Origin: Octopus sinensis
Taxonomy: Eukaryota
Direction: 5' to 3'
Length of the DNA: 64,000 nucleotides
Assembly: GCF_006345805.1 (NCBI RefSeq)
Contig: NC_043011.1
Location: 5,580,001 to 5,644,000 of the forward strand
Position numbers and translations under genes: made by a program
Notes under the pieces: model-generated
What the model saw: the letters and a program-made list of their open reading frames with translations, nothing else
What the model was told of the DNA's origin: nothing
Databases searched by the model: none
Shown here: piece after piece, positions 20,421-42,036 of the stretch
Numbering within the stretch: position 1 is the first letter of the stretch
Layout: every line of letters begins with the position of its first letter

Positions 20421-20475
<55 letters not shown>

Positions 20476-20660
20476 GTGTTTATCTCCTCACCATCACTTG
20501 ACAACCGACGCTGGTGTGTTTACGTTCCCGTAATTTAGCTGTTCCGCAAAAGAGACCCGTAGAATAAGTACTAGGCTTACAAAGAATAAGTCCTGGAGGT
20601 CGATTTGTTCGACTAAAGACGGTGCTCCAGCATGACCGCAGTCAAATGACTGAAACAGTT
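20380..20660 (+). mobile_element. SINE family 1, 5'-truncated
   Basis: gtggatttggtaga..(TG)n..gacaaccga..gcaaaagagac..tagaataagtact. Confidence 0.85.
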
Positions 20661-20961
20661 AAAGTTGAGACCGCTACAACGCAGAAAATTTCTGTCTCAC
20701 TATTGGCTAAAAATACATAGTTTTTTCGATTTCTAAATATTTGTAACTTTATCCTCAATTTGTTCTCCACAGTATCATGGCTTCACAGCAGTAAGAGTGG
20801 AAAACTACATCAATATAACCGATTTTCAGATTTTTTACATCCTTCTAAAAAAAAATGCAGATTCTGTGAATCAATTTAACTAGATCCCATATATGTGTGT
20901 CTGTGTATGTATATATGTACACACACGCAACACACGCACACACACACACACACACACACAC

Positions 20962-21009: not shown

Positions 21010-21907
21010 ATATATAATGTAGTATATAAAATTTAGAACACACAAACACACGTGTGTGTGGTGTGTGTGTGTGTTTGATATTATGTATATTGTTCGCCAT
21101 TGTTGTATTCGTTGACCGAACGCGGCACTCTTAGTATGTTTGTAAGCCATTTTTCATTTCTTTTATATGCTTCTATGAGTGTTGAAATCTTTATGAAAAC
21201 ATCGGTTTGACACCGAGTTTATTTTTGTTATTTTTGTTACTTTTGTAAAATCATTTCTAGGGTGGAGTTTCAGTTTTTTATACTCAGTTCTTTTTTTATA
21301 ATTACCAGAAACGATTTGAGGAAGGGCCTGAAGACTTAGAACCCCAGCGACTATTCTTCGAGGAATAGCAGGCACAGGAAATGGATGGATGAATTACTGC
21401 TCTAATCCTTTTATTCTTTAGCCTTTTGTTTCTTTTTTTTCTATCCCTTTTACTGCTATGATTGCACGCTTGATATCATAGACTTGAAGGAATTTATGTT
21501 ATGAAAAAATATAAGAATTATATTGAAATATATGTATGGTCATTTTATTCTTTCGTAATGATTTCCCAACATAAGAAAATAAAATTAGAAGCTATTATCT
21601 CCCCGTAAATAGCAATTTCCAGCAATTCCACTGCATATTTGGTTGTTACGTGCAATTGTTGTTTTTAAAGAATATATTCTTTTATTCTTTTATTCTTTTA
21701 CTTGTTTCAGTCATTTGACTGCGGCCATGCTGGAGCACCGCCTTTTAGTCAAAGAAATCGACTCCATGACTTATTCTTTGTAAGCCTAGTACTTATTCTA
21801 TCATTCTATTTTGCCGAACCGCTAAGTTACGGAGACGTAAACACGCTAACATCGGTTGTCAAGTGATGGTAATGTAGAGGAACAATCACACACACACACA
21901 CACACAC

Positions 21908-21999
<92 letters not shown>

Positions 22000-22890
22000 G
22001 TAGTATATAAAATTTAGAACACACAAACACACGTGTGTGTGTGTGTGTGTGTGTGTTTGATATTATGTATATTGTTCGCCATTGTTGTATTCGTTGACCG
22101 AACGCGGCACTCTTAGTATGTTTGTAAGCCATTTTTCATTTCTTTATATGCTTCTATGAGTGTTGAAATCTTTATGAAAACATCGGTTTGACACCGAGTT
22201 TATTTTTGTTATTTTTGTTACTTTTGTAAAATCATTTCTAGGGTGGAGTTTCAGTTTTTTATACTCAGTTCTTTTTTTATAATTACCAGAAACGATTTGA
22301 GGAAGGGCCTGAAGACTTAGAACCCCAGCGACTATTCTTCGAGGAATAGCAGGCACAGGAAATGGATGGATGAATTACTGCTCTAATCCTTTTATTCTTT
22401 AGCCTTTTGTTTCTTTTTTTTCTATCCCTTTTACTGCTATGATTGCACGCTTGATATCATAGACTTGAAGGAATTTATGTTATGAAAAAATATAAGAATT
22501 ATATTGAAATATATGTATGGTCATTTTATTCTTTCGTAATGATTTCCCAACATAAGAAAATAAAATTAGAAGCTATTATCTCCCCGTAAATAGCAATTTC
22601 CAGCAATTCCACTGCATATTTGGTTGTTACGTGCAATTGTTGTTTTTAAAGAATATATTCTTTTATTCTTTTATTCTTTTACTTGTTTCAGTCATTTGAC
22701 TGCGGCCATGCTGGAGCACCGCTTTTAGTCAAAGAAATCGACTCCATGACTTATTCTTTGTAAGCCTAGTACTTATTCTATCATTCTATTTTGCCGAACC
22801 GCTAAGTTACGGAGACGTAAACACGCTAACATCGGTTGTCAAGTGATGGTAATGTAGAGGAACAATCACACACACACACACACACACACA

Positions 22891-22959
<69 letters not shown>

Positions 22960-22960
22960 A
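21010..22960. repeat. Near-perfect tandem duplication, period ~981 bp
   Basis: ORFs 21163-21375 and 22144-22356 translate identically at offset 981; breakpoints fall in (CA)n(TA)n tracts. Confidence 0.92.
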
Positions 22961-23350
22961 TATATTTTACTGTTTATATGTTTGTACTGTCGTTACCGTC
23001 TTGCTTTTTTTTTACCCCTCTGCGAAAAGATCTCAGAATTTTAATTGATTTGCTTTTCGCGGGAAGGAATTTTTCTTCGAAGTATACGTCTCGCTTTTAT
23101 CCTTCGAAACGTTTAGTAGATGAAATCTTAGCGACTGAAGAAGGGGATTTTTCGTTGTGCTTATTGTCCTGTATCTCTCCTTTTTTTTTTTTTTTTGCTT
23201 GTCTTGTTCCTTGGTTTGTGTCTATGTGTTTCGTCTCTCTATGTGTTCGACGTCTTTTTGGTGTCCTGTACACATATATGCGTGTATATGTACATGTAGA
23301 GGTAGGTACGTACATATATGTTTATATATATGCATATGTTCTATTTTATT

Positions 23351-23399
<49 letters not shown>

Positions 23400-25342
23400 T
23401 AAAGTAACAAACTAAAGAAAATTTCTTCAAGGGTTAAAACATCCAATTCAATGGTCCGTCAGTTGAATACCACATAAATAGGAGTATAATTCAAATTACG
23501 AACAATAAATTAAATAGAGAGATACAACTGACAATCCAATAATTTATTTCTGTTATAATATAACATAATATACAATGAATATAATAAAAGATAAGATAAC
23601 ATAAACAATTATTAAAAACCAAAGAAACCAACAATTTGTTTCGACTTGTACACATCTTTTGATATATAATCAATTCAATTCCCTTATATAAACCTCATCA
23701 GAGCCAATGGTTTGAAGACAGACGAAAATCCATGTGAAAGGACGGCTGGATTGTAAAAGAAGATTAATTCAAATGCCTATGTATTATGAGCGTGAACATT
23801 AGCCGTTCAACAACAAAATTATAACGGACAAAATAATTAAGTAGAATCTACAACTATCGAAGTATATTTCTATATATCTCAAATACGTTTATGCCGAAGA
23901 CAATCTTTCGCTCTTATAATGACATACAACAATAACATACAGGTCCATTATTAAATATTAGAGTCTTACTTAATCTAGAAACTAATAAAACGTGTAAAAA
24001 AAAAACATAAAGGATAATCTTATTTTTAATATATAAGGACTCTTCTATTTATTTAAAGTTATTGATATAAACAAGATTGTTTAAAGTAACTAATAAAAAA
24101 AGTTCTTTATTTATTGTTTATCGGAGGGAGATTTCCGTAATAAATATGAACAGAAACCTGACGAAAATCTTCTTGGTTTACTTAATTTGTCGTAGGGGCA
24201 ATTCCGTAATAATGAAGATAAGTTTAGAGCTACAAGCATTATTACATAAATAGATATAGAGTTAGGCTATAATAACGGATATCAAAATATAACTAGTCTT
24301 TTTTTTTAGAAGTAACCAGATTTTTTCCTGTGGTACGTTTACGCTGATGTGTTTGAGGTTTTCATTTCCAGTGGCAGCAATTTTATTTATTTTATTTTTG
24401 CTGGTAATTTTCTTCAATGATCAATGTCTAAACATCACTAAATCTCTAGCAAGGTTTACGATTGCGGCTGTTAGTGACTCTGTTGAAGAAGAATTTACAG
24501 AGATTTACTACGCGGAAAGAATTGAATTCCTGCTGCCTTCTCCAGTCTTATAGGAAATATGGTTGCAGATCAAACTGACTAAACATTCGTTCAGCATCCA
24601 GTGCACCTACTGTTTAAACAACCTTGCAATCAGACTAAATAGATCATAGGATTGATTCGAGGCACTTTCTGGGGGTTCGGTGCCTCCATGTATGGATGGG
24701 GTGAATTATGGAACAGTGTAGGGTAGGTGAGGGGAGCAAATGTTTGACTATTTCATGCAGATTAAAAGGTGGATCGATATTTGGACAATCAACATTCACT
24801 TGTTACTATATTTAGATTACTGGGATGAGGGGAAGAATGGAAGGGTGGCGTAGAAGATCAGCAACAACAACAACAACAACAACACCCAAATGATGAAGGA
24901 GAGATTGAATAAGACTGATATTAAGCATTTACATTGTTAGGTAGGAGCGGAGAGCCGAGTGCTTGTTTTTCTTTATGTCCTGGGAACTATAGTCATTGAC
25001 GGAATGCAATAGCGTAACGAACGAAAGCATATTTTGCTGTCATCGCAAACACACACACACACACCTTACACACACACACCTTACACACACACACCTTCAA
25101 CACAAAGAAATTAAAGGGAAGGACACAGGAGTATGAAGGGAGGAAGACGTGTTATAGCGGTAGATAAGAAGACACCTACATTATCGCATACATACGTGAT
25201 ATTTGAAGACATAAAGCGAATATTTTATTTCAACCGCCCAAATTACGTTTTATTTACGTAACCACCACCACTGGTTAAACAAGTCTATAAATAAATGGAC
25301 GGACACACACACACACACGTCGGTGTAAGTGATTTCTATTCC

Positions 25343-25380
25343 TATATAAGCAACTTGCGGGATTTTAAATGCTTCATTGA
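25343..25380 (+). promoter_or_regulatory. Candidate TATA box + initiator for glycosyltransferase gene 1
   Basis: TATATAAG at 25343-25350 and TCATT at 25374-25378, 33 nt from the TATA T to the Inr A. Sequence-only inference in AT-rich DNA. Confidence 0.35.
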
Positions 25381-25461
25381 AGAGAAAATACACAAAGCGT
25401 TGGAACTCTCTTTAAACCTTCCATTCAGATATTATTTTAAATGACTGCTGTGTAATGACAG

Positions 25462-25731
25462 GTAAAGACTGAAAGGACACGCTTGATTTTTACCTGTTTA
25501 TATTATTTATATACATATATATTTATATATTTATTTGTTAATTTATACATAAAGAAATACTTACTCAAAAAAGAAAAAAGAAATAACCTGTTGTTGAGAG
25601 GCTGGAGTAAAACAAGATTGAGAAAGAAAAGAAGTGTTAAAATAATTCAAGGAAGTATTTGTACATATTTTAAAAATCGAAAAAAAGACAGAAAAAAAAG
25701 CGCAGTAAAATATAATTAACTGAATTTACAG
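25462..25731 (+). other. Candidate 5' UTR intron of glycosyltransferase gene 1
   Basis: CAG|GTAAAG donor at 25461/25462; TTAAC..TTTACAG| acceptor ending at 25731, 5 nt before the ATG; weak pyrimidine tract. Confidence 0.35.
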
Positions 25732-25736
25732 GGTCA

Positions 25737-27701
25737 ATGGGAAAGCAAATATATTTGTATTTTTCTCTATGGATTACGCTGGCTCTTGCTGGACTGATTT
25801 TAAATATTTTCAATATTGACTGGCAGAAGACAAGCATACCACAAGGTATTATTCTTATCATTGTGCTTGGAATCCTGCAAGGTTCTGTTTACGAATTCCC
25901 AGTGCAGACGATCGCCACATTGATTGTCGGCGGCAAAAAGCGTGAAAATCCAACGGCTGAAGCCGACAACTTCACACTCGTTCTGAATTACAACTTATTA
26001 GCTGTCGCAGTTGAAGATATTGAAGAATGTTTCCAGACAATGTTTCAAGCATTCATGGGCAATTTATGTTTCAATGTATCTGCTGTTCTTGTCAGTGCAA
26101 CTTCGGAAGAAAATCTCAAAATACATGAACTAAATTGTCGTGATAAATACCGGAAGTTAATATACGATGAACTTTTCAAAGAAGGTGTCTGTTTCGCTAA
26201 TGGCTACTATGACGATATCAACCAAGACCGTTTTAAGAACGTATGGATGTATTACCAAATGTGTCCAAAAGATATTTTTATTAGTCAACACCTTGATTCA
26301 ATATGTGATCGATTTGCACGAGAATTTATGGTAATTCACCGCACCAGCAAAGTTTTACGTAAATGTGGACAATATCAAGATCTAATGTTGCTATCTGAGG
26401 GAGAATCTTTTGCTTATACATATACTGACACGAAATACTATGGAAAGATGGCCCGTCCTTATAACCAGCCCACCTTTTACTATTCAGCTGACGTGCAAAA
26501 TATATTTAACCGGCGATTTGATTACACCTTAGTATTGGATGCCGATACAGGGGTTCCCGATGGAACAGTAGAAAAGCTTCTCAGGATAGCTGCAGCAAAC
26601 CCAGAGAAAGGGATCATCCAACCATCTATAAAACTAAGTCGCGATGAAAACGATACCATTTACATGAGACTGGAAGCAATGAGACAAATGATCTACGAGC
26701 CAATGACAAATGCTGTCACAGCATTACTTGGTCAGTGTGGTTTCTTCGGAAAAGGGCTCATCAAAAACCGTATATACATCGAAAATATAATCGGGGATAG
26801 AGACAATCTAATCGAACGTGTTCCTATCGATGTTCTTAGTCACGACACATTTGAAGCAGCTTTACTCAAACCTTACTATGCCGGCTCAGTGTTCTTACTG
26901 GAAGCTCCCAGTTTTAATTACGTTACATGGAACATTCGAGAACGACGTTGGAATCGAGGTGAGGTTATATTATCCATGTACTTCTGGAAAAATACGATTG
27001 GTATAATTTTTAGGAGCTTACAGAAAGTTTTTCAAAGGGATAAGTTTAATAAGACAGTTCTGAGGACCGAAAGTAAACTTGATTTCGTTACGGCTTATAT
27101 TGCCCATTCGGCATTAAGACAGATGTTGATGAAACCTTTCTTACTTATATTTATTTGTTTACATGTTGGTGTAGAACTCAAGTTTTCAATTGCCCCAATC
27201 GCTATCATTATGTTCATGGTTCTTATCTTCCCTAAATTTGCTACGTGTACCAGATCAAACATTAAATATGTTATAATTGAAACGTTGACATCCATCTTAC
27301 AATTTACACCTGAAGCCATTGTTGGTTGCGTTCGCATCTTTCGTGCAATCCAAGCGAATATTTCCGCCAATTGTAAATGGATTCCACAAAGATCTGTCGA
27401 AGAAGAATTTAAAAACTGCAATCCTTTCCTCTCCAGTCTGAAACACTTATGGATGTACTCTTTATTGGCCGCTGTTGTTGCTCCGGTGGTAGTGATTTTT
27501 GCTCCAAGTTCAAATCTTATATTAAGTATGTTGATCACATTATTTCTTCTTCCGCTGTTTACTGGAGTAACGTCATTAAAAATGAATTTTCATTTCGGAT
27601 CCACTTCTTCGTTTGCGCCCAACGAACATCCTGACATTTGTGTAATTACTTCTCCCAAGATCTTCGGTTCTGGACAAAAATATAAAATTAATAATGTCTG
27701 A
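25737..27701 (+). CDS. Intronless membrane-bound GT-A glycosyltransferase, OpgH(MdoH)/Cgs(GT84)-like putative beta-1,2-glucan synthase, paralogue 1 (654 aa)
   Basis: Two N-terminal hydrophobic helices, then RKCG, YTLVLDADT (DAD 26538-26546), GIIQP, GFFGKGLI, VLSHDTFEAALL (SHD 26838-26846) and RERRWNRGE (26937-26951), followed by C-terminal hydrophobic helices. In-frame stop upstream at 25713-25715. CDS is near certain; the family call is from recalled motifs. Confidence 0.85.
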   Translation: MGKQIYLYFSLWITLALAGLILNIFNIDWQKTSIPQGIILIIVLGILQGSVYEFPVQTIATLIVGGKKRENPTAEADNFTLVLNYNLLAVAVEDIEECFQTMFQAFMGNLCFNVSAVLVSATSEENLKIHELNCRDKYRKLIYDELFKEGVCFANGYYDDINQDRFKNVWMYYQMCPKDIFISQHLDSICDRFAREFMVIHRTSKVLRKCGQYQDLMLLSEGESFAYTYTDTKYYGKMARPYNQPTFYYSADVQNIFNRRFDYTLVLDADTGVPDGTVEKLLRIAAANPEKGIIQPSIKLSRDENDTIYMRLEAMRQMIYEPMTNAVTALLGQCGFFGKGLIKNRIYIENIIGDRDNLIERVPIDVLSHDTFEAALLKPYYAGSVFLLEAPSFNYVTWNIRERRWNRGEVILSMYFWKNTIGIIFRSLQKVFQRDKFNKTVLRTESKLDFVTAYIAHSALRQMLMKPFLLIFICLHVGVELKFSIAPIAIIMFMVLIFPKFATCTRSNIKYVIIETLTSILQFTPEAIVGCVRIFRAIQANISANCKWIPQRSVEEEFKNCNPFLSSLKHLWMYSLLAAVVAPVVVIFAPSSNLILSMLITLFLLPLFTGVTSLKMNFHFGSTSSFAPNEHPDICVITSPKIFGSGQKYKINNV

Positions 27702-27974
27702 ACGAGAAAACAAGACTGAGCCAACGAAACAAAGTCAAGATTGAAAAGAAAAAAAAACAATCAAAACCCATCTAAAACACATTGACTCTCATTAATTCAC
27801 CTCACTTAAATTATTACTTATTTATGGAATACTTTTGATCATATATAAGTATTACCACGGCCTTTAACCATGCCTTTTTTTTAATCTGTCTCTGTCTCAT
27901 CTGAGCACGTCTTTCTCTCGCAGTCTCATGAACTTTCTTGCCTTCATAAAAAGAGGCAAAAATAGTTTCTTGTC

Positions 27975-28007
<33 letters not shown>

Positions 28008-28109
28008 TCATATGATTGAAACGAAATGGGAACTGATTTACTGCTATCTCAGGTTTTTATTTTTGATGTTCTGTATAAATTCTAAAAATTGTTTACACAG
28101 CCAATTGTT

Positions 28110-28165
28110 GACCATGATGATGATCATCCTCATCATCATTATCATCATCATCATCATCATCATCA

Positions 28166-28212
<47 letters not shown>

Positions 28213-28249
28213 TATCATCATCATCATCATATCATTATTATTAGAATTG

Positions 28250-28332
<83 letters not shown>

Positions 28333-28380
28333 GTTGTTGTTGGTGTTGTGACTGCTTTTATTATTGTTGCTATTGCCATT
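28110..28380. repeat. (CAT)n + (TTA)n microsatellite
   Basis: Seen directly. Confidence 0.97.
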
Positions 28381-28501
28381 ATTCTTATTATATAAAAAAT
28401 GGCTCATTACGAAAGTAAGTCCGTATATACACATTCATAGTTACAACCACATCTTGTGAAAGACAAGTTTTACTTTTAGTTTTATCCATCCATCCATCCA
28501 T

Positions 28502-28570
<69 letters not shown>

Positions 28571-28797
28571 TCTTTTTCACCACAATTTTCTCTCACTCTT
28601 TCTTCCTGTTTCTGTTGCCCCAAAGGAGCCAGCCTTGTCGCACTCTGTGTCTCGCTGAATCTCCCCGAGAGCTACATTAAGGGTACACATGTCTGTGGAG
28701 TGCTCAGCCACTTGTACGTTAATTTCACGAGCGGGTTGTTCCGTTGATCGGATCAACTTGAACCCTCGTCGTAACCGACGCAGTGCTACAACGATGC

Positions 28798-28876
<79 letters not shown>

Positions 28877-29268
28877 ATATATAGATATATATATATACTA
28901 GCGTGCCCGTTTCATCAAAACTTTTATAACTGATAGAAAATGGCTTTATCAAATCAATGAGAGAAACCATTGATAAATTCAACATTTGAGAAAATATATG
29001 TGTACAGAATTGAAGCCCTTGCAGAATCAGATGCTGTGGTAATGTCTTTATATATGTGGTTGCTATGATATGTGTTGATGTTATGGTATATACTCTAGAA
29101 TAAAAATGTTGTTGCTAATATTAACATATTCTGTGATAATATGGTTGCTATGACATGTTGATTTAACGATCATACACTCTGACATTAATATCGTCTTACT
29201 AAGCTGGTTGCTATAGAATGTCAGTTCTAGTATTGTTACAAGTGTAGTTAATATCTTTGCGGTTTCTA

Positions 29269-29471
29269 AGGCGGCGAGTTGGCAGAAACGTTAGCACGCC
29301 GGGTGAAATGCTTAGCGGTATTACGTCCGTCTTTACGTTCTGAGTTCAAATATTGCCGCGGTTTACATTGCTTTTCATCCTGCCTTAATCGATAAAATAA
29401 GTACCAGTCGAACAATGGAGCCAATTTAATCCCCAAAACTGCTGGCAGTATACCAAAATTTGAAACCAATA
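29269..29471 (+). mobile_element. SINE family 2
   Basis: ggcggcgagttggcagaaacgttagcacgccggg..ctgagttcaaat..cttttcatcc..gataaaataagtaccag. Confidence 0.85.
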
Positions 29472-29712
29472 ACCATTGATTGTCTTAGCATTACAACACG
29501 ATTAGCAGAAAATTTTCTTTCATCCAGCTGGACAATATACTTGGATTATCACAAAGGATTTTCCTCCTCAAGCCAATGAAAAACCATTCGACTGTCTATG
29601 TATGCATGTGTGTGTTTTTATTTAATTACATGATTCACTCCATGGGGTGGTCAGTTATTTTCCAGTCTTTCAAAGGTTTAGAAATTACTTCGATATTTAA
29701 GGTAAATTCTTT

Positions 29713-29890
29713 TCTACTCTAGGCACAAGGCCCGAAATTTAGGGGGAGGGACCTAGTCGATTAGATCGACCCTAGTATGCAACTGGTACTTAATTTATCG
29801 ACCCTAAAAAGATGAAAGACAAAGTCGACCTCGGCGGAAACCGCTAAGCATTTCGCCCGGCGTGCTAACGTTTCTGTCAGCTCGCCGCCT
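29713..29890 (-). mobile_element. SINE family 2
   Basis: Reverse-complement match to 29269-29471, with an internal deletion. Confidence 0.85.
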
Positions 29891-31658
29891 TTCCACAGAA
29901 TGATACTGCAGGCGGTATCCATGGGTATTAGCAGTAGACAGACGACTGGCTACTTTAAAAAAAAAAGCGAGTTTAGTCGTTAAGCTACCCGGTACGAATT
30001 GATCCTATAATGTAAAGAAAACTGACCTATCACTTCTTCCACTTCATGAATTACAAGATTCAAAATAAATTTTCATAAATTATTTTTGTAGATGATCATA
30101 GATTTTTACACATATTCATTCATATTCCAAATTTCCATGTTTTCATAAATTATAATAAAATGTTTTCCATAAATTTTCATAAATTATTATACAATTTTTC
30201 ATACATGTTGATAAATTTTCATAAGTATTTATATATATTTTATATATTCTTGTTTTATTTGTTTTGTTTCGTTTTTATTTTGATACAAATTTTAATGAGG
30301 AAGAATAAAAAGTGAAGCTGTGAAAATTAAACAGTGTTTTTTTTTCTTTTTATTTGCTTTATTGTATTTGTTTCTGGATGTAGTATTCTGGGCAGATTGC
30401 AAAGAAGTCTGCAAGTTGTGATCTTGGCCCCTTATGAGCCAGGGAAACCGGGTAAATAACCTTACCTGTTGTGCAGTTCAAGAAAGCAAAGTTATATCTG
30501 GTCGTGGGGTGAAGAAATTCGTGGTTCGGTCCCGCTACGCATACCTTAGGGGATGAAAAGATGTCCGAATAAAATAATAAAACAGGGACAACGAACAAAA
30601 GGTCTTTAGTTTTATCGGAGGTGTGACTCTTTACGCTAAGATGGACTTTTTGCCTCTTATGACAGCAATATCAAAACCACTATAGCAAAGTACTGAGGAC
30701 GATATAATCCACAAAAAACTTTCAAGGCAGTGGTGCTCCAGCGTGGCCACAGTACAAAGGTTGAAATGAGTAAATGAGTGACCAGAAACAACAAGAATCC
30801 GCATTAAGCGTCAAGTTTGGTTTAGTGGACGAATATATCCAGAAGTAATTTCCAGTTTATGTTTTACTAGCTGAGTATCCGTCGTTACCAGGTAATTTTC
30901 ACAGTAGAATACCTTTACAGATTTTCCGAATAGCACACCTTCATAAGTTGGGTGTTATCCGTTTTGACGGGGATGTTTCAAAAATTTCTTTCATCGCATC
31001 CTTTCAAATGATAAGAAAGTGGGGAAGTGCTTATGAAAATATTTTTGAAAATTTATGAACACCCCTCCCCCTTTCCGGACAAATCTTGTCCTTTTTATTT
31101 TTTTTGCATTAGGCAATTAAAAACAATGTGAGGTACCTTTTTAGTAAAAAAAAGATAAAAAATTGAACATAACACTTAAACGGTGCGAGAAGCCATTTCA
31201 ATCTCCAATTCTTTTATTTTCAAATAGAAAATGAAACTTAATTTAAAAACAATGATGAAATTAAAAATTTTATTTTCATTAACACCCTCACCCCACCCCC
31301 AAAATCTTCTAAAATTTTGGCTTTTTTCAAAATAATTTTTTAATCATAATATTTTTAACCCTAACCTTAATCTGAATCAGCATTTTGTTTCTGTATATAA
31401 TTTCAATATAATTTTCAGACGAAAAGGTGATTTAAAGAAGATTTAGCTGTCGTTTCTAGCACGTCCTATGCCCATCTTGTACCTTCCTCGTTTCTTTGTC
31501 ACTCTGACATATATTAATGTTTTTTCAATATTTTTCTCCACACAAACACATTTTATGGAATGATTAATGTAGTGGTTTATTGCTACGGTTTAAGCAAACA
31601 CCACAAAATACATTTGTAATATAACGTTTTAATCACTCTATCACCCTAATGAAATTCC

Positions 31659-31702
<44 letters not shown>

Positions 31703-32150
31703 CTCAGTGTGAGCGACATTCTTTTATAGAGAGTGAGAAAGTTTAACATGACAAAATAAAAGAGATGACAATAAAAAGGAAATCTTTTCTGTTGTCACAG
31801 ATTTTCAAAATCTAAAATTAAGTGAAAATTGCTGTACTTTTTTTTTTACGACGAATCTGCGTCTGCGATTCATTTATTCAGAAAAATTTTAGAAAAATAT
31901 TACAGAAATTTAAAGGTTAATTACTTTTGCCCAATCAGAAAACAGGATTTGGAAGCTAAGCAATTTGCATGTGATAAATTGAGTATCATGAAAATGAAAG
32001 TAACCGTGACAAGCCGCAGATTTAAACCGAGGTTTCTCATTTTTACCTATGGATCCTTTGATTTCCATTTTACATGGACCCATTCGATGTTTAAAAACTC
32101 TTATTCTTTTAAATTAGATATTATTAAGACTTGTATAAGTATTCTTTGCT

Positions 32151-32539
32151 ACTCTAGGCGCAAGGCTCGAAATTTTGGCGGGAGAGCACCAGTCGATTAG
32201 ATCAACCCCAGTACGCAACTGGTACTTGATTTATAGAGCCCTGGATGAAAGGCAAAGTCGACCTCGGCGGAATTTGAACTCAGAACGTAGCGGCAGACGA
32301 AATACCTATTTCTTTACTACCCACAAGGGGCTAAACACAGAGAGGACAAACAAGGACAGACAAACGGATTAAGTTGATTACATCGACCCCAGTGCGTAAC
32401 TAGTATTTAATTTATCGAACCCGAAAGGATGAAAGGCAAAGTCGGCCTCGGCGGAATTTGAACTCAGAATGTAGCGGCAGACGAAATACCGCTAAGCATT
32501 TCGCCCGGCGTGCTTACGACTCTGCCAATTCGCCGCCTT
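32151..32539 (-). mobile_element. SINE family 2, two adjacent copies
   Basis: The core aaggcaaagtcg(a/g)cctcggcggaatttgaactcagaa occurs twice. Confidence 0.85.
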
Positions 32540-33247
32540 AAGGACTTGTATAAATATTGCTAAAATAGTTTGTGTGTTGTGGACGTAAAAACCAATTTGT
32601 TGCGCACAAACTTCACTAGTCTAATGCAGTTTTTTCATGGCCCCCTGAAAAATTACTGTGTTTCCCTAATTTTCAATATTGCATCTGTGGACCCCAAGAG
32701 TCTATATCAGGGGTTCTCAACAATTTTTTTCTATGGACCCACTTTGATTACTGTTTCATTCTGTTGGGCCCCTATAGTCATTTGATGTTTAAAAACTAGT
32801 TTTCTAGAAACCTCTTTCAAAATTCTTACTTCGCTATTCACATATTAACTTGTCTAGGTTGAATTATATAAAATGCAAGAGAATGAAACCTAGTTGTTTC
32901 TTGCAATACATACAAATACATTTCAAGGACCCTTAAAATACTATTTTAGATCCCCAGCTTAGTATTTTGTTGCGTGCATCCCCAAAACTCTCGGGGACTA
33001 TATGCCCCATCCCCGCCCCGGTTGACAATTCCTGCTTTAAACAAAATGGAAGCAATGCGTAACAGTTAATACATATACAAAGTGAGGGGCTGTCGAAACT
33101 CGTAGCAAATTATATATTTTTTATTATTATTTACGGACGACATTGCGTTTGGGCTTAGATTTCGAAAATCAAATTCGTTTTCCTCTAGAATGTACCGTCT
33201 CAGAGCCTTCTGGGGCTAAACACATATCCATAACTACAAACACTCAC

Positions 33248-33289
<42 letters not shown>

Positions 33290-33336
33290 AAGCAGAAATT
33301 TAACAAAAGCTGTTACTCGGAGTTTCACGTTCCCAA

Positions 33337-33374
33337 CTGTCCGACGAACGGGAACGTGAAACTCCGAGTAACAG
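33337..33374 (+). ncRNA. Minimal hammerhead ribozyme-like motif (U4C core variant)
   Basis: CTGT-CCGACGA-ACG(GGAA)CGT-GAAAC-TCCGA-GTA-ACAG: stems I and II pair and the cleavage triplet is GUA. Confidence 0.5.
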
Positions 33375-33486
33375 CTTTTGTTAAATTTATGCTGCTTTTA
33401 AATAAAGCATATTACTCTACCTCTGGTATTTGAGTACTCTTTTTTCCACCTTGTGTTTACTCAGGTAACATTTATGTGTTTACCCC

Positions 33487-33542
<56 letters not shown>

Positions 33543-35247
33543 CATACATACATACATCATACATACATACATACATACATACATACATACATACGTACAT
33601 ACATTAATACATCAATACATACATACATACATACATACATACATACATACAACATACATACATACAAGCATTTTTTCAACATATTTTATGTTTTATCTTT
33701 TAAGTGTTTCAATCGTTAAATTGCGACCATGTTGGGGCAACTGCCTTGAAGAACTTTTAGTTGAATAAATCGACCTAAGTGCTAATTTCTTTTTAAGCCT
33801 GATACTTATTCCATCGGTATCTTTTGCCGAACTGCTAAGTTACGGGCGCACATACGCACACACACACACACACACACACACCAACACCGGTTGTCAAACG
33901 GTAGTACAGGACAAACACAGATGCAAAGATGCGCGAGGGCGCACACACACAGATACACGCACGAACGCACACACACACATACACACGTACATATGCACAC
34001 ACACAAATATATATATATATATTTACGGCGAGCTTCTTTCGGTTTCCGTCAACCAAATCCACTCACACGTCTTTGCTTGGCCAAAGTCTATAATTGAAGA
34101 CTCTAACCCAAGGTACCGTACAGTAAAATTGAACTTGAAGCCATGTGGTTGGGAAGCAAACTTCTCACCACACAGCCTCGGCTGCGCCATATTCATTTTT
34201 ATGTTCACTACTAGCATTGGTGAGTAGATCTGTAAACCCGAAGTGCATTGCCTCTTAACGTTTCGGGGATTTTACACACCTCAAGAATATTATTCATATC
34301 ATCTAACTTACCAAAATATTTACCTACATGGTACATGGATACATGCAGGCATACATACATTCATACATGCATAGATACATACATGCAGGCATGCATACAT
34401 ACATACATGTTCCCATACATAAATATATATATACATATATACAAGCATGCATGCATACATATATGCATGCATACATACATACATTCATGCATGCACACAC
34501 AGACATACATGCGTGCGTACATACATATATGCATACATACATGCGTGCATACATACATACATGATGCATGCATACATACATGCACACATATATTTATATA
34601 TACATACAAGCATGCACACATGAATATATACATACATGCATACATATATACATGCATACATATATACATGCATACATACATGTTGGCTGCCCCCTCGTTA
34701 TCGAGTATGGCCATTGCATGAAGCTTAATCAATGTTGTTATCGTGCAATGCCTGTGCAAGAAGATTTTTTTTAAAGTGAGGAAAGGCTTTGCACTGAGTC
34801 AATCCCACTCACTAAGCAACAGCAGCCATAATCCGAAAAGAAGAACAAGTCATCGGTAACCACTGAACCGCAGGTTTTATGTCGGAGTTATCCCAGTTTC
34901 CTGAGTTACCTTCTCCTAGAAGGATTCCCTAACAAAGGCTAGGAGTCCTTCACTCCCAATGGTTTAACCGCGCGATCGAGTATTCAGTCCGATTATTTCT
35001 ATGTCCCCGCGCATGATACAGCCTTAAGACATTTATTGGATGGCCGTTGACTCTCAAGAGTTCCTCCGCCCTTTGACGGGTTTTGTTTTTCCTCCCGCAG
35101 TCCTAATAATAATAAACACCCTCCTCACCAAGCATGCATACATACATAGACACATACACACATGCATACATACGTAGGTACATACACGCATACATACATG
35201 CATACATGCGTACATACATACATGCATATGTTTTCAGAAAATGTAAT

Positions 35248-35340
35248 GCAGTTTTTAAATTCTTCTTCGATAGATCTTTCTGGAGTTCTTTTGCATTTTA
35301 TGGAAATGAGTGTCTTTTAAATTTGAATTCCAAATATATT
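35248..35340 (-). pseudogene. Decayed fragment of a third glycosyltransferase copy
   Basis: The minus strand reads LISIKCKRTPERSIEEEFKNC, versus NISANCKWIPQRSVEEEFKNC in both intact genes; the DNA matches 36608-36650 (gtttttaaattcttcttcga.agatcttt); there is an in-frame stop upstream. Confidence 0.7.
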
Positions 35341-35746
35341 CAGTATCTTCTGCCATCTTACTCGTCTTTTTTATTAAATAGTCATTAATCTATCAATTAT
35401 GCCCCTTCAGTTCTATTCCGTTGGACGATGCTGAAAAGCTACAAGTCCACCATCTTGACTCTTATAGCAGACGATATGTAGTGGAAAGAGACGGCATATT
35501 CAAAACAGAACACATCCATCTTTTACTATTTGCTGGAATGAAACGTTAGAAATAACAGTTGGTAAATTAATTTTAGTAATCTCTTCAAATTATTTGCTGA
35601 ACCAAAGTTAAATTGCATTTTTCTCTTTAATCAATATTCGAACGTACCCTAGGAATAATTTTTACTGGCCCTCATTAATGTTCAATGAGCTATTCTTACT
35701 TTCTCTCTGCCTCTGTCTCTCTCTCTCCTTCTGTGTGTGTGTGTCA

Positions 35747-35809
<63 letters not shown>

Positions 35810-36286
35810 TCTCTCTCTCCCGGTATCATACTGAGCAAATATCAAACTGGCAACTTTATAACGAGTCAAAAAAATTATTTCTTTCATTCCAGTTCTCACT
35901 CCTCTCTCTCTCTCTCAGCTCCCTTCTCCTTTCTCGCTTTTTCTCCCCAGCCTTCTTGTTTTCTTTTTGGTTGTCTTCTAAAGCTATATATAATTGTAAA
36001 CAAGCTGCCGTTACAAATATATGAAACAATATGTATACCAACCAGTTAATTTCACATGCAAATATTGTATGGCGATGAAGCAATAACAAGAAATAATATT
36101 TTTTTGAAATATATATTAAAACAAACAATTTTTAGTCGCTGCTAATTGGTGTACGGAAAAGTCAAAACAAACGCTTCACTTTCAGAGAAATTCATTCCAA
36201 ATAGTGACAGTTTCAATAAATACTATGATTGATTTGACTAAATATCATGATTGATGTTTCAAATAAAAATAGAAATAGGAAGAGAT

Positions 36287-38290
36287 TTACCACATATCAT
36301 CATATGTCTGGTTTAGGTAAGCACCCGTAGAATTGATAGATGTCGTTTTTAAACCTAAAGTCAGACTGCTAGTACTTCCAAGAACACTAACTTGTAGGTG
36401 CTGCTTTGAAGTTGAAATTACACTTCGGGAGGATTTCAGGTCCATAGTTAGTGATGTTAGCCCAGTAAACAGCGGAAGAAGAAATAAAGTGATCAACATA
36501 CAGAGAATAATGCTTGAACTTGGGACAAAAATCACTACCACCGGAGCAACAACAGCGGCCAATAAAGTGTACATCCATAAGTGTTTCAGACTGGAGAGGA
36601 AAGGATTACAGTTTTTAAATTCTTCTTCGACAGATCTTTGTGGAATCCATTTACAATTGGCGGAAATATTCGCCTGGATTGCACGAAAGATGCGTACGCA
36701 ACCAACAATGGCTTCAGGCGTAAATTGTAAAAATGATGTCAAAATTTCTATAATGATGTATTTAGCGTTTGATTTGGTACACGTAGCAAATTTAGGGAAA
36801 ACAAGAACCAAGAACATGATTATAAAGATTGGTGCATGCGGATACCTTAGGTCTATACCAACGTGTAAACAAATAAATATAAGTAAGAAAGGTTTCATCA
36901 ACATCTGTCTTAATGCCGAATGGGCAATATAAGCCGTAACGAAATCAAGTTTACTTTCGGTCCTCAGAACTGTTTTATTAAACTTATCCCTTTGAAAAAC
37001 TTTCTGTAAGCTCCTAAAAATTACACCAATCGTATTTTTCCAGAAGTACATGGATAATATAACCTCACCTCGATTCCAACGTCGTTCTCGAATGTTCCAT
37101 GTAACGTAATTAAAACTGGGAGCTTCCAGTAAGAACACTGAGCCGGCATAGTAAGGTTTGAGTAAAGCTGCTTCAAATGTGTCGTGACTAAGAACATCGA
37201 TAGGAACACGTTCAATTAGATTGTCTCTATCCCCGATTATATTTTCGATGTATATACGGTTTTTGATGAGCCCTTTTCCGAAGAAACCACACTGACCAAG
37301 TAATGCTGTGACAGCATTTGTCATTGGCTCGTAGATCATTTGTCTCATCGCTTCCAGTCTCATGTAAATGGTATCGTTTTCATCGCGACTTAGTTTTATA
37401 GATGGTTGGATGATCCCTTTCTCTGGGTTTGCTGCAGCTATCCCGAGAAGCTTTTCTACCGTTCCATCGGGAACCCCTGTATCGGCATCCAATACTAAGG
37501 TGTAATCAAATCGCCGGTTAAATATATTTTGCACGTCAGCTGAATAGTAAAAGGTGGGCTGGTTATAAGGACGGGCCATCTTTCCATAGTATTTCGTGTC
37601 AGTATATGTATAAGCAAAAGATTCTCCCTCAGATAGCAACATTAGGTCTTGATATTGTCCACATTTACGTAAAACTTTACTGGTGCGGTGAATTACCATA
37701 AATTCTCGTGCAAATCGATCACATATTGAATCAAGGTGTTGATGAATGAAAATATTCCCTGGACAGTATTGGTAATACATCCATACGTTCTTAAAACGGT
37801 CTTGGTTGATATCGTCATAGTAGCCATTAGCGAAACAGACACCTTCTTTGAAAAGTTCATCGTATATTAACTTCCGGTATTTATCGCGGCATTCTAACTC
37901 ACGTGATATGAGATTTTCTTTCGAAGTTGCACTAACAAGAACAGCAGATACATTGAAACATAAATTGCCCATGAATGCTTGAAACATTGTCTGGAAACAT
38001 TCTTCAATATCATCAACTGTAACTGCTAACAAGTTATAGTTGAGAATGAGCGTTAAATTGTCGCCTTCAGCCGTTGGGTTTTTCCTTCTGTTGCCGCCGA
38101 CAATCAATGTGGCGATCGTCTGCACGGGGAATTCGTAAACAGATCCTTGTAGGATTCCAAGCACAATGACAAGAATAATACCTTGTGGTATGCTTGTCTT
38201 GTGCCAGTCAATATTGAAAATATTTAGAGCGGCACTACACAGAGCAAAAACGATCCATAACATAAAATACAAAAAACTTCCTATATTCAT
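36287..38290 (-). CDS. Intronless membrane-bound GT-A glycosyltransferase, OpgH(MdoH)/Cgs(GT84)-like putative beta-1,2-glucan synthase, paralogue 2 (667 aa)
   Basis: Same motif set as paralogue 1 (DAD, FFGKG, LSHDTFE, RERRWNRG); only 2 aa differences over ~295 central residues, with divergent termini; in-frame stop 10 codons upstream of the ATG. Confidence 0.85.
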   Translation of the reverse strand: MNIGSFLYFMLWIVFALCSAALNIFNIDWHKTSIPQGIILVIVLGILQGSVYEFPVQTIATLIVGGNRRKNPTAEGDNLTLILNYNLLAVTVDDIEECFQTMFQAFMGNLCFNVSAVLVSATSKENLISRELECRDKYRKLIYDELFKEGVCFANGYYDDINQDRFKNVWMYYQYCPGNIFIHQHLDSICDRFAREFMVIHRTSKVLRKCGQYQDLMLLSEGESFAYTYTDTKYYGKMARPYNQPTFYYSADVQNIFNRRFDYTLVLDADTGVPDGTVEKLLGIAAANPEKGIIQPSIKLSRDENDTIYMRLEAMRQMIYEPMTNAVTALLGQCGFFGKGLIKNRIYIENIIGDRDNLIERVPIDVLSHDTFEAALLKPYYAGSVFLLEAPSFNYVTWNIRERRWNRGEVILSMYFWKNTIGVIFRSLQKVFQRDKFNKTVLRTESKLDFVTAYIAHSALRQMLMKPFLLIFICLHVGIDLRYPHAPIFIIMFLVLVFPKFATCTKSNAKYIIIEILTSFLQFTPEAIVGCVRIFRAIQANISANCKWIPQRSVEEEFKNCNPFLSSLKHLWMYTLLAAVVAPVVVIFVPSSSIILCMLITLFLLPLFTGLTSLTMDLKSSRSVISTSKQHLQVSVLGSTSSLTLGLKTTSINSTGAYLNQTYDDMW

Positions 38291-41096: not shown

Positions 41097-41389
41097 TACA
41101 CAGAGAAGAAACACAGAAAGAAGGAGAGAAAAAAAAAGGCGTGCAGAGGCTAGCGAATCAACATGGCGATCTGATTTCGGCCAGAAGTCAAAGATCAAAC
41201 GTGAGACGCAAGAGCGAAATTAGGGGAGATAATAGGGTTAAATGACCTCGCTCCAACACAAGAGTGTGTGTGCGTGTATGAGAAGAGTGTGTGTGTGTGT
41301 ATGAGAGAGTATTAGTGCGTATGAGAGGTCTGGACGTGTGTATTTTTTATATGATGTGATGTGTAAAGTCGTATGGTGTAGTGTAGAGA

Positions 41390-41830
41390 GAGGAGATGAG
41401 GGAAGAGGGGGTAAGGGGGAGAGAGAGGGGAGGGGAGAAAGAAAGGGGAGAAGAGGGGAGAAGGAAAGGGGAGAAGAGGAGGGGAAGGGGGAGGAGGAAG
41501 GAGAGGAGAAGAGGAGGGGAGAGAAGGGGGAGAAGGAAGGAGAGGAGAAGAGGAGGGGAGAGGAGGGGAGAGGAGAAGAGGAGGGGAGAGGAGGAGGGAG
41601 GATAGAGAGAGAGGGGAGAGAGAGAGAAGGGGAGTGAGGGAGCAGAGAGAAAGAGGGAAGGGGAAGAGGGAAGAAGGAGGGAGGGAGAAAGGGAAGAAGG
41701 GAAGAGAAGTAGGGGTGAAAGGATGAAGGACTGAAGAGAAGTAGGGGTCGGGGGGAGGTTAGATGAGGAGGGGGAGAGGGGGTTAGATGAGGAGGGGGGA
41801 GAGGGGGAGTTAGATGAGGAGGGGGGAGAG
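41390..41830 (+). repeat. Polypurine GA-rich low-complexity tract
   Basis: Almost only G and A on the + strand, with short gggggagagggggttagatgagga-type repeats at the end. Confidence 0.95.
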
Positions 41831-42036
41831 TTGAGACCAAATGGCGTATAAGAGCGAAGAGAGAAGATTAATTCCTGTTCACGGCGCAAACGGGAATCCG
41901 GATGGCCTCTGTGCAAGGACAAACCGAACACAGGCAGGTGTTGCAAGGAGTGACCGGTGGAGCGGAAAAATGCATGTAAACACAACGTTTTCAAGGCGAT
42001 CCAAAATTAGTTGAATTCAAAGTGAACACATACGCA

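Follow-up and report, generated by a model that had tools for sequence, protein, structure and literature searches.

Two convergent octopus genes encode predicted membrane glycan synthases of an OpgH/Cgs-like family

Two intact, intronless genes resembling bacterial beta-1,2-glucan synthases lie in a 64,000-nucleotide stretch of Octopus sinensis DNA (contig NC_043011.1, positions 5,580,001 to 5,644,000; hereafter the window), which raises the question of whether they are genuine octopus genes, where they came from and what their products may synthesize. The ORF listing gave both genes at the coordinates and lengths of the original prediction. Gene 1 (25737..27701, plus strand) encodes an OpgH/Cgs-like membrane glycosyltransferase of 654 aa, the orthologue of Argonauta P0001. 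Gene 2 (36287..38290, minus strand) encodes its inverted paralogue of 667 aa, the orthologue of Argonauta P0002. The two are arranged tail-to-tail around an 8.6-kb spacer (27702..36286) of repeat-rich octopus DNA containing microsatellites and SINE-like repeats (TRF; blastn of flanks). At about 36% GC, stops are expected in ~7% of codons as calculated from composition, so the probability that a frame of 650 codons stays open by chance is near 1e-20.

Both ORFs are genuine, intact and host-integrated octopus genes. Their composition was like that of the host (GC 0.38, GC3 0.36), and the eukaryotic flanks suggested earlier were borne out by many microsatellites, multi-copy SINE-like repeats and a reverse-transcriptase ORF at 12107-13441. 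The earlier guess of an octopus as host was correct: positions 22274-31164 of the window matched the Octopus vulgaris chromosome record OX597831.1 at 98.7-99.5% identity, and gene 1 was also intact in this independent, chromosome-scale assembly. In addition, the same tail-to-tail pair (P0001, P0002) was found in Argonauta. Because of the shared O. vulgaris locus and flanks and the convergent Argonauta pair, contamination, which had been named as a possible refutation, was ruled out.

Genes 1 and 2 are an old inverted duplicate pair. They shared 88% identity in protein and 94% in DNA; in blastn the similarity stopped at the CDS limits, and no similarity was found between the flanks of gene 1 and those of gene 2. 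Comparison with the Argonauta orthologues, proposed earlier as a check, gave dN/dS values of 0.083 for gene 1 and 0.089 for gene 2 at a dS of ~1.6-1.7 for both, showing that both genes are under strong purifying selection. The strongest constraint was found in the catalytic core, with dN ~0 in codons 200-400. The mismatch profile and windowed dS delimited a gene-conversion tract at CDS nt 541-1440 of gene 1 (26277..27176, plus strand) with its match in gene 2 (36851..37750, minus strand). This tract contained 14 mismatches in 900 nt versus ~13-14% divergence in the remaining CDS, and windowed dS was 0.03-0.05 in the centre versus 0.47 and 1.29 at the ends. Core identity of the two copies was 99% within Octopus and 96% within Argonauta versus 91% between the species, while the C-terminal tails told the paralogues apart, Oct1 pairing with Arg1 and Oct2 with Arg2 in the tail alignment. 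These patterns indicate that the two copies have been homogenized by gene conversion.

The genes are not an octopus peculiarity. Members of the family were identified in cephalopods, gastropods and bivalves (60-66% identity), in hemichordates (acorn worms; ~50%), in dinoflagellates and other protists (~44%, 600 bits) and in giant-virus MAGs (~31%, 245-318 bits); animal homologues with named species came from Mollusca and Hemichordata only. Octopus, Argonauta, Haliotis and Saccoglossus all have an intronless CDS, and one eukaryotic member has an intron in its gene. The octopus genes belong to a distinct, uncharacterised family conserved in molluscs and hemichordates. Some members carry the automatic NCBI name 'glucans biosynthesis glucosyltransferase H-like', and a literature search found no published animal enzyme of the OpgH/Cgs type, in agreement with the original prediction.

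The AF2 model of the gene 1 protein (pLDDT 90.9) and hydropathy supported the expected layout of two TM helices, a GT-A domain and several further TM helices, and showed the latter to be a bundle of four. The N-terminal TM pair (residues 3-64; 25743..25928, plus strand) comprised AF2 helices 3-26 and 34-64, with hydropathy peaks at 7-25 and 33-56, and was followed by a basic loop, GGKKRE, which by the positive-inside rule would place the GT domain on the cytosolic side. The GT-A catalytic domain (residues ~78-415; 25968..26981, plus strand) was delimited by alignments, the Cgs profile alignment and motifs colinear with E. coli OpgH. All motifs quoted in the original prediction were present in gene 1: NYNLLA (residue 84), VSATS (119), RKCG (208), VLDADT (266), GIIQP (292), FFGKG (336), LSHDTFEAAL (367) and RERRWNRGE (401). 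The corresponding GT-A elements are NYN (84-86), S120-A121-T122, RKCGQYQD (208-215), D268xD270, QP (295-296), FFGKG (336-340), SHD (368-370) and RERRW (401-405). A helical insert at residues ~125-195 was specific to the family and missing in distant members of the alignment.

An interface helix and the four TM helices followed (residues ~421-612; 26997..27572, plus strand), as assigned from AF2, conservation and profile alignment to Cgs 783-986. The TM4-TM5 interval contained a conserved stretch of ~60 residues, QFTPEAIVG...KWIPQ, with an invariant W548; it matches the TM4-TM5 helix/loop element of Cgs and may have a gating role. After the last TM helix there was nothing but a disordered, fast-evolving tail of 34 residues (621-654; 27597..27698, plus strand; pLDDT <50; tail alignment). 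No further domain was found with Pfam, and the predicted absence of a cyclisation or phosphorylase domain was thus upheld by Pfam and the AF2 model.

The closest characterised relatives were OpgH and the GT84 core of Cgs, as had been proposed; profile searches against the PDB, Foldseek and hhalign agreed on this. MdoH models were the sole NCBIfam family matches (E 2e-9), with a score of 36 bits, far below the equivalog cut-offs of at least 328, and Pfam GT2 models remained sub-threshold. In the profile search against the PDB, Cgs/NdvB was the only find (E 5e-26), spanning the GT and TM regions, and hhalign aligned E. coli OpgH over 350 columns (probability 99%, E 2.6e-18). The top Foldseek match of the AF2 model was also Cgs (E 1.5e-14, TMq 0.59), with BcsA, HAS and CesA behind; a standard animal GT2 as the best profile or structure match, which was another possible refutation, was therefore not found. 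Sequence identity to OpgH and Cgs was ~12-25%. Among the processive GT2 polysaccharide synthases of animals and giant viruses, hyaluronan (Xenopus, chlorovirus), chitin and cellulose synthases have a similar overall build, a TM bundle carrying a cytosolic GT-A domain (Foldseek E 1e-7 to 1e-10), but they have TED/GDD and QxxRW motifs, other TM arrangements and a TMq of 0.3-0.46 versus 0.59 for Cgs. They also provide a precedent for a synthase family common to animals and giant viruses (PMC9614988). Taken together, the predicted fold and topology and the catalytic motifs of the octopus proteins match those of Cgs/OpgH.

Cgs and the octopus proteins have in common a 2+4 TM topology, a long conserved TM4-TM5 element, and DxD, F-x-GKG, SHD and RxxRW, and the profile alignment mapped family residues onto Cgs D624/D626, D739 and R773. 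The roles of these Cgs residues (D624/D626, D739, RW motif) and the Cgs topology were taken from PMC10901819. At about 12% identity in structural alignment, Cgs is a larger protein (~2,800 aa) that also carries a GH144-like cyclase, a GH94 phosphorylase and a further domain at its N-terminus. Only the synthase core is present in the octopus proteins, and therefore no cyclising or length-trimming by the Cgs route would be expected. Moreover, Cgs D527 corresponds to octopus Ala121, and the self-glucosylated (self-priming) Tyr694 of Cgs had no conserved counterpart in alignments of the octopus family.

OpgH/MdoH is the backbone synthase of osmoregulated periplasmic glucans, and in E. coli it moonlights as a UDP-glucose-dependent FtsZ antagonist. 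Like the octopus proteins, it (E. coli b1049) is a stand-alone synthase without fused processing domains and has colinear RK.G..D, VLDAD, GIIQ, LSHDxxEAAL and RxRRW, but at 847 aa it is longer, its N-terminus forming an extended cytoplasmic region, and it has LSDS, NE and YWGHN where the octopus protein has VSAT, NL and FFGKG. The original claim that FFGKG is Cgs-like and FEAAL OpgH-like was confirmed by the profile alignment and motif comparison with OpgH.

The label 'bacterial-type' did not hold. The family signature was found in none of the reference bacterial and archaeal genomes, and searches of 185,579 reference genomes and of 1.84 billion representative proteins turned up no close bacterial homologue; the best bacterial relatives scored about 50 bits, whereas members from viruses and protists reached 245-600 bits. 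By bit score, the closest prokaryotic relatives were a clade of uncharacterised synthases from uncultured bacteria in metagenomes (P0245/P0249-type; 47-57 bits versus 32 for E. coli OpgH). These share with the octopus proteins, at ~20% identity, a length of ~620-650 aa, the N-terminal TM pair, KKxGxYQDL, FFGKG, SHD and RxxRW, but they retain the Asp of SDT, lack the ~70-residue helical insert and share a bacterial operon with the gene for an exported GH144 homologue. On two independent contigs (L019, L020), the synthase gene was followed by a GH144-type endo-beta-1,2-glucanase homologue matching 5gzh at E 1e-29 and 2e-46. This neighbour supports a beta-1,2-glucan ancestry, and both characterised relatives, OpgH and Cgs, make beta-1,2-glucan.

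We consider it probable that this old inverted pair consists of functional octopus genes for an inverting glycan synthase that is embedded in the membrane, is probably processive and falls in the OpgH/Cgs branch of the GT2 superfamily. For the donor sugar and its linkage, for processivity and the route of export, and for membrane location and biological role, we infer the following. Two N-terminal and four C-terminal TM helices would anchor a cytosolic GT-A domain, in which DxD (D268/D270) and K209-G211-D215 would bind the nucleotide sugar, most likely UDP-glucose. D370 of SHD would act as the catalytic base, and the growing acceptor would be held by R401-W405 (RERRW) and the conserved TM4-TM5 loop. 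The product would most likely be a linear beta-linked glucan, with beta-1,2 linkage by homology, crossing the membrane through the enzyme's own TM bundle or a partner transporter. A hint of export came from dinoflagellate transcripts, in which the family domain was fused into an ABC transporter or MFS protein; comparably, the partner of Cgs is the ABC exporter ChvA/NdvA. As a guess, the polymer could be secreted or displayed at the surface, for instance in mucus, egg coats or matrix.

A processive GT2-type synthase with the same fold but a different donor, or with a polymer or glycoconjugate other than beta-1,2-glucan as its product, is somewhat unlikely. Such a reading places the divergence after the departure from the OpgH/Cgs lineage. 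It draws on the replacement of uracil/ribose-contacting acidic residues throughout the eukaryote and virus family, with A121 in place of the first UDP-contacting Asp (Cgs D527; 'LSDS' in OpgH) and L87 in place of the Glu of OpgH 'NE', whereas bacterial relatives keep SD(T/S); donor specificity may differ because of these changes. The family-specific insert, the low identity to the bacterial branch and the additional Foldseek matches to cellulose, hyaluronan, chitin and beta-1,3-glucan synthases point the same way, as does the genomic context: no OpgG-, GH144- or GH94-type partners were seen near animal, protist or viral family genes, nor was opgG/opgD in the 64-kb window. Against it, beta-1,2-glucan is indicated by all three of the nearest lineages for which there is functional evidence, namely OpgH, Cgs and the P0249-type clade, in which GH144 is the neighbour, and the distinctive SHD and RxxRW are kept instead of TED and QxxRW. 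The loss of the first nucleotide-binding Asp could also suggest catalytically dead proteins kept for a structural or regulatory role, but this is very improbable given that DxD, the SHD Asp, RxxRW, KxGxxxD and QP were 97-100% conserved among 157 family members across phyla, protists and viruses, and that the catalytic core is the most constrained region.

As to origin, a recent bacterial transfer into octopus, or contamination of the assembly, would fit intronless ORFs whose named relatives are bacterial only. It was rejected as next to inconceivable in view of the O. vulgaris and Argonauta loci, the host-like composition, the orthologues throughout molluscs in a tree that tracks mollusc classes, and the lack of close bacterial homologues. 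The earlier proposal, which left open either horizontal acquisition long ago or patchy retention of the family, was pitched at the right level: the genes would go back to an ancient acquisition, at least before the molluscan radiation, or to patchy retention, and no bacterial donor could be identified. Acquisition from a marine protist or giant virus, possibly separately in molluscs and hemichordates, is a reasonable minority view. The nearest non-animal relatives are dinoflagellate/protist and giant-virus genes, the CDSs of four animal genera are intronless, named animal hits are limited to two phyla, and the protist clade fell between hemichordates and molluscs in the NJ tree. However, the phylogeny was by NJ only, with weakly supported deep nodes (molluscs+protists 22%, molluscs+hemichordates 7%), so that one origin in bilaterians followed by many losses, or animal-to-protist transfer, may apply instead; many further hits could come from other animal phyla, and one eukaryotic gene contains an intron.

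A short decayed family-like fragment was also detected ~1 kb downstream of gene 2 (35194..35307, minus strand; tblastn, blastn). It resembled family residues 542-574 at 47% amino acid identity (tblastn E 3e-4), and 38 nt matched gene 1 at 95% in blastn.

The window contained two ORFs of the lengths and positions originally predicted, encoding proteins of 654 aa (gene 1; 25737..27701, + strand) and 667 aa (gene 2; 36287..38290, − strand). The genes were convergent (tail-to-tail) with a gap of 8.6 kb and shared 88% protein identity and 94% DNA identity; the DNA similarity ended at the borders of the coding sequences (CDS), and the flanks were unalignable by blastn. The probability of a 650-codon open frame arising by chance at ~36% GC was estimated from composition to be ~1e-20. 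Both ORFs matched their flanks in composition (GC 0.38, GC3 0.36), and dozens of microsatellites around the pair made the surroundings typical of animal DNA. The predicted host context was also reflected in a 444-aa reverse-transcriptase ORF (RVT_1, E 8e-31; 12107-13441, − strand), which lay in a GC-richer block at 6-16 kb and is a retroelement remnant with no relation to the synthase genes, and in a SINE-like element of ~250-300 bp, for which at least six further occurrences in the window (20421-20664, 44739-44999, 49430-49734, 54619-54841, 57053-57283, and 62295-62532) had 84-88% identity.

Positions 22274-31164 were 98.7-99.5% identical to the Octopus vulgaris record OX597831.1 (a 72.53-Mb chromosome record), in which the gene 1 ORF was intact, with an uninterrupted 654 aa (3001-4965 of contig L018, corresponding to OX597831.1:72527068-72535489). 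In Argonauta hians, the orthologues of gene 1 (P0001) and gene 2 (P0002) were located on a 13.6-Mb scaffold at 9,884,216-9,886,180 (+) and 9,898,360-9,900,369 (−), likewise convergent, with 12.2 kb between them. The matching O. vulgaris locus and the convergent Argonauta pair excluded contamination and recent insertion, confirming the octopus as the host. Cephalopods are under-annotated for this family: the deposited O. vulgaris model (L018 3001-5422), a spliced 410-aa "hypothetical predicted protein", is evidently wrong, and the O. bimaculoides entry is partial (458 aa). The CDS was intronless in Octopus, Argonauta, Haliotis, and Saccoglossus, its span equalling the protein length in these four animal species. 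Unlike the mollusc and hemichordate genes, that of the eukaryotic homologue P0098 had an intron after the transmembrane (TM) pair, as its first 63 residues, comprising this pair (6245-6427 of contig L012), lay ~1.6 kb from the remainder (8058-9725).

Pfam matches of the protein were sub-threshold only (PF00535, 15.3 bits with a cut-off of 23.3; PF13632, 13.4 bits with a cut-off of 27). In NCBIfam, the MdoH/OpgH models alone matched (E 2e-9), the best being NF003958 with 36 bits vs. a cut-off of 419, and this match spanned residues 257-408 only (numbering of gene 1). A single-sequence phmmer search of the PDB retrieved nothing relevant. The family profile retrieved Cgs, the synthase of cyclic beta-1,2-glucan, from the PDB (E 5e-26), aligned from the DxD strand to the C-terminal TM helices, and hhalign against E. 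coli OpgH, the backbone synthase of osmoregulated periplasmic glucans, gave a probability of 99.0 (E 2.6e-18) over 350 columns (185-608 against OpgH 308-705). An AlphaFold2 model built with 68 homologues had a pLDDT of 90.9 and a pTM of 0.89, with disorder limited to residues 621-654. Cgs entries took the first three ranks among the Foldseek matches of the model (E 1.5e-14, TMq 0.59); BcsA, hyaluronan synthases, plant CesA, Fks1, and chitin synthases came next. AlphaFold2 and Foldseek both confirmed a GT-A fold, and the predicted relatedness to OpgH and the Cgs core was upheld by the profile, hhalign, and Foldseek searches. The model had two TM helices before the GT-A domain and four after it, with a conserved element of ~60 residues (QFTPEAIVG...KWIPQ; 509-560), including the invariant W548, between TM4 and TM5. 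Cgs has six TM helices and a 76-residue TM4-TM5 helix/loop at the GT interface (PMC10901819); the 2+4 helices and the TM4-TM5 element of gene 1 correspond to this topology.

All motifs quoted in the original prediction were found within residues 84-409 of gene 1 and were colinear with those of OpgH (OpgH/gene 1: PICNED/LNYNLL, YILSDS/VLVSAT, RKSGNIDD/RKCGQYQD, VVLDADS/LVLDADT, GIIQSS/GIIQPS, YWGHN/FFGKG, ILSHDFVEAAL/VLSHDTFEAAL, and RDRRWCHGN/RERRWNRGE). FFGKG was Cgs-like, as originally suggested, Cgs having FTGKG. Residue roles in Cgs, including those of the catalytic base D739 and the RW motif, were taken from the structure paper (PMC10901819). D268-A-D270, the DxD metal/diphosphate motif, aligned with Cgs D624/D626 and the DAD of OpgH (D268 100% and D270 97% conserved), S368-H369-D370 with D739 (97-98% conserved), and R401-E-R-R404-W405 with RQHRW of Cgs and RDRRW of OpgH (97-98% conserved). 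After beta-strand 2, where other synthases have their first nucleotide-binding Asp (D179 in BcsA, D527 in Cgs), the protein had Ala121 within an invariant S120-x-T122. Cgs Y694, the self-glucosylated Tyr primer in the IF1h loop, aligned near P322; Y320, two residues away, was Tyr in molluscs and was missing in hemichordates and more distant members.

As also predicted, no cyclase or phosphorylase (GH144-like or GH94) was detected, no further Pfam domain being present and the protein ending 40 residues past the last TM helix. OpgH has the partners OpgG/OpgD (GH186), encoded alongside it. No OpgG/OpgD-type gene was found in the 64-kb window or in ±10-kb flanks in Argonauta, Haliotis, and Saccoglossus. 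The proteins thus differ from OpgH in falling below the MdoH equivalog thresholds, in lacking the D527-equivalent Asp, and in having no OpgG partner in these regions, and from Cgs in lacking its accessory domains and the same Asp. By sequence and modelled fold, they are homologous to, and predicted to work like, OpgH and the GT84 core of Cgs, yet are members of neither, and form a separate, uncharacterised eukaryote/giant-virus branch.

A search of 5.8 billion proteins gave 160 clusters, and HMMER, run exhaustively over 1.84 billion representatives, recovered just 195 proteins at E<=1e-3, indicating a small and isolated family. Argonauta homologues were 78-79% identical to the octopus proteins, and P0003, P0004, and P0019, three proteins clustering with the octopod genes, were ~69% identical; the cephalopod clade had seven members (100% bootstrap). 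Identities of 56-66% were found in gastropods (Haliotis, Patella, Lottia, Littorina, Batillaria, Nucella, and Babylonia) and bivalves (oysters, scallops, unionids, Dreissena, Mya, Mercenaria, Mactra, and Pinctada), in whose species several paralogues were common, and 49-53% in the hemichordates Saccoglossus, Ptychodera, and Glandiceps. No animal phylum beyond Mollusca and Hemichordata was represented among the named matches of the 5.8-billion-protein search. Some members had been automatically labelled "glucans biosynthesis glucosyltransferase H-like" by NCBI. In a Batillaria attramentaria gene model (P0091), a PF11790 "glycosyl hydrolase catalytic core" domain is attached to a truncated synthase. 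The model is probably an annotation chimera, as Octopus, Argonauta, Haliotis, and Saccoglossus had no PF11790 neighbour within 10 kb of the synthase gene.

The family domain was also present in dinoflagellate transcripts, from Gymnodinium smaydae (EukProt; P0126) and MMETSP. In these transcripts the synthase domain was located between two ABC transporter halves (~2,200 aa) or fused to an MFS transporter, and further ORFs contained two or three tandem synthase copies (fusion/tandem set: P0124, P0125 (MMETSP), P0126, and P0127; P0121-P0123). By analogy, the fusions suggest a synthase-exporter coupling reminiscent of Cgs with ChvA/NdvA. In compact protist contigs the family gene adjoined CCT chaperonin and ubiquitin hydrolase genes, and one clade of the family had an additional N-terminal GT2 domain. 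Three contigs of giant-virus metagenome-assembled genomes (L002, L003, and L006; IMG/VR GVMAG) encoded members of ~600-650 aa with 30-31% identity to octopus, adjoining genes for a fused type II topoisomerase, HSP70, an NAD-dependent ligase, and another GT2 protein. The best viral fold match was a Yasminevirus GT2-like protein. No glucan-processing gene was found beside the giant-virus and protist members, and such a synthase is unmentioned in a 2022 review of giant-virus glycans. No publication on animal, dinoflagellate, or viral OpgH/Cgs-like genes was found in a literature search; one apparent match of OpgH with eukaryotes was spurious, the term being "OpGH195".

Among 185,579 bacterial and archaeal reference genomes, no relatives were found with the family signature, nor with the bacterial-like protein P0249. 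P0245/P0249 were the nearest prokaryote-like sequences, and their source could be followed back to two metagenome contigs (L019 and L020); a metagenome scan with P0249 as the lone query had found nothing, and one with a two-sequence alignment succeeded. The neighbouring genes were bacterial (MacB/FtsX ABC transporter and RHS protein). On both contigs (L019 5911-9185 and L020 420-3607) a synthase gene (~630-650 aa) was directly followed by a PF10091 gene, whose product matched the GH144 endo-beta-1,2-glucanase 5gzh (E 1e-29 and 2e-46) as well as XCC2207 and began with a hydrophobic signal-like segment. Judged from these matches, the contigs carry an uncharacterised bacterial two-gene unit of a synthase and a predicted exported GH144-type homologue, in effect a "split Cgs". 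By bit score, the P0245/P0249 clade was nearer to the octopus protein (47-57) than E. coli OpgH was (32), and the clade itself resembled the eukaryotic family more than it resembled OpgH.

In a distance-based neighbor-joining tree of 160 domains (200 bootstraps), cephalopods (100%), hemichordates (98%), a protist/dinoflagellate clade (95%), a giant-virus clade (95%), and a crown group of animals and protists (90%) were recovered, together with cephalopods plus gastropods (70%) and molluscs (62%). The mollusc topology tracked the classes, which argues for vertical descent since before the molluscan radiation. Support among molluscs, hemichordates, and protists was <=28%, and the animal genes may stem from a single bilaterian origin with losses, from separate acquisitions, or from transfers out of animals. 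Features typical of horizontal transfer were present (integration in a host chromosome, host-like composition, and no introns), and no bacterial donor was found among the reference genomes and representative proteins scanned. The core of the original observation was right. Its framing of a bacterial gene in an octopus has to be abandoned, as the family occurs in molluscs, hemichordates, protists, and giant viruses and its signature is missing from reference bacteria and archaea. Instead, it comprises ancient conserved mollusc and hemichordate genes that are shared with marine protists and giant viruses and have the bacterial beta-1,2-glucan synthases as distant relatives.

A basic loop following TM2, together with the lack of any signal peptide, suggests that the GT-A domain is cytosolic. 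It would draw on a nucleotide sugar, probably UDP-Glc, to lengthen a beta-linked chain in an inverting reaction, for which D370 would be the base, and the acceptor would be held by RxxRW and by the TM4-TM5 element; because cyclase and phosphorylase are missing, the product would be linear. The chain might leave through the TM bundle of the enzyme itself, a route proposed for OpgH and hinted at by the exported bacterial GH144 partner, or by way of a separate transporter, which is the arrangement of Cgs/ChvA and the one to which the ABC and MFS fusions of dinoflagellates point. We regard this overall picture of a UDP-Glc-type inverting beta-glycan synthase with an exported linear product as reasonably probable. 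All functionally informative surrounding lineages, namely OpgH, Cgs, and the GH144-linked clade, point to beta-1,2-glucan, as indirect evidence for the product. Ala121, and Leu87 in place of the Glu of the OpgH "NE", occurred in every eukaryotic and viral member, and the bacterial relatives keep the UDP-contacting Asp (SDW/SDS/SDT). A change of donor or product, as the reason for the altered nucleotide pocket, is a less probable alternative. Tentatively, it is conceivable that molluscs and hemichordates make beta-1,2-glucan or a new glycan with an OpgH/Cgs-type machine of altered nucleotide pocket, belonging to a dedicated family that they share with dinoflagellates and giant viruses and that moved between marine eukaryotes and their viruses instead of arriving directly from bacteria.

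To our knowledge, OpgH and Cgs are the only characterised types of beta-1,2-glucan synthase. As judged by homology, the present genes constitute a third branch related to these synthases, in eukaryotes and giant viruses. The branch is ancient, shows strong conservation in two animal phyla, and is covered by a confident structural model. Beta-1,2-glucans are described as bacterial polymers in the current literature (PMC12102758). If the proteins are active, animals have a polysaccharide synthase not recognised before. In molluscs of aquaculture importance, its product could be relevant to mucus, egg coats, or the extracellular matrix, or else to osmoprotection or host-microbe signalling. If synthesis by the OpgH/Cgs-type machine is true, the family would join the synthases of chitin and hyaluronan as a new class of animal polysaccharide synthase, and it would give eukaryotes their first route to a polymer now regarded as bacterial. 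Tools for a direct test are available in the specific GH144/GH162 beta-1,2-glucanases and in opgH mutants of E. coli K-12. The exchange of genes between marine animals, protists, and giant viruses is another matter for which the family offers a clean test case.

A comparison of gene 1 and gene 2 with their Argonauta orthologues (Nei-Gojobori), as had been proposed, gave dS of ~1.64-1.70, dN of 0.136-0.151, and dN/dS of 0.083-0.089, indicating strong purifying selection. The two octopus genes were a mosaic: CDS nt 541-1440 (26277-27176, +, in gene 1; 36851-37750, −, in gene 2) differed at 14 of 900 sites, and the 5' 540 nt and 3' 420 nt outside this tract differed by ~13-14%. Windowed dS was accordingly 0.03-0.05 in the centre and 0.47 and 1.29 at the ends. 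The disordered C-terminal tails paired by orthology (Oct1-Arg1 and Oct2-Arg2), and catalytic-core identity was 99% for the two Octopus copies and 96% for the two Argonauta copies, against 91% between species; paralogues grouped by species in the tree (100% and 81% bootstrap). Orthologous tails together with species-wise cores indicate that the duplication is older than the Octopus-Argonauta split and that the cores were homogenised by gene conversion between the inverted copies. Since the Argonauta pattern matched that of Octopus, gene conversion is ongoing between convergent copies ~9-12 kb apart.

Several minor features were also observed. Directly before the gene 1 start codon, the sequence tttacag|GGTCA ATG (25725-25736) resembled a 3' splice acceptor, and the 5' UTR may therefore contain an intron; no comparable signal was found at gene 2. 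Approximately 1 kb downstream of gene 2, a 38-aa stretch (35194-35307, − strand) resembled synthase residues 542-574 at 47% aa identity, with 38 nt at 95% to gene 1, and could be what remains of another copy or a leftover from the original duplication. A ~675-bp segment occurred as two nearby direct copies (21293-21967 and 22274-22945). The ORFs at 27928-28395 (+, 155 aa) and 34248-34721 (+, 157 aa) were not genes; they were translations of ATC/TAT and ATAC microsatellites (poly-Ile/His and "YIHT" repeats). A low-complexity purine-rich array of GGAGGGGAGAAGA-type at 41240-41840, with strong GC and AT skew, yielded spurious minus-strand ORFs of 200-215 aa.
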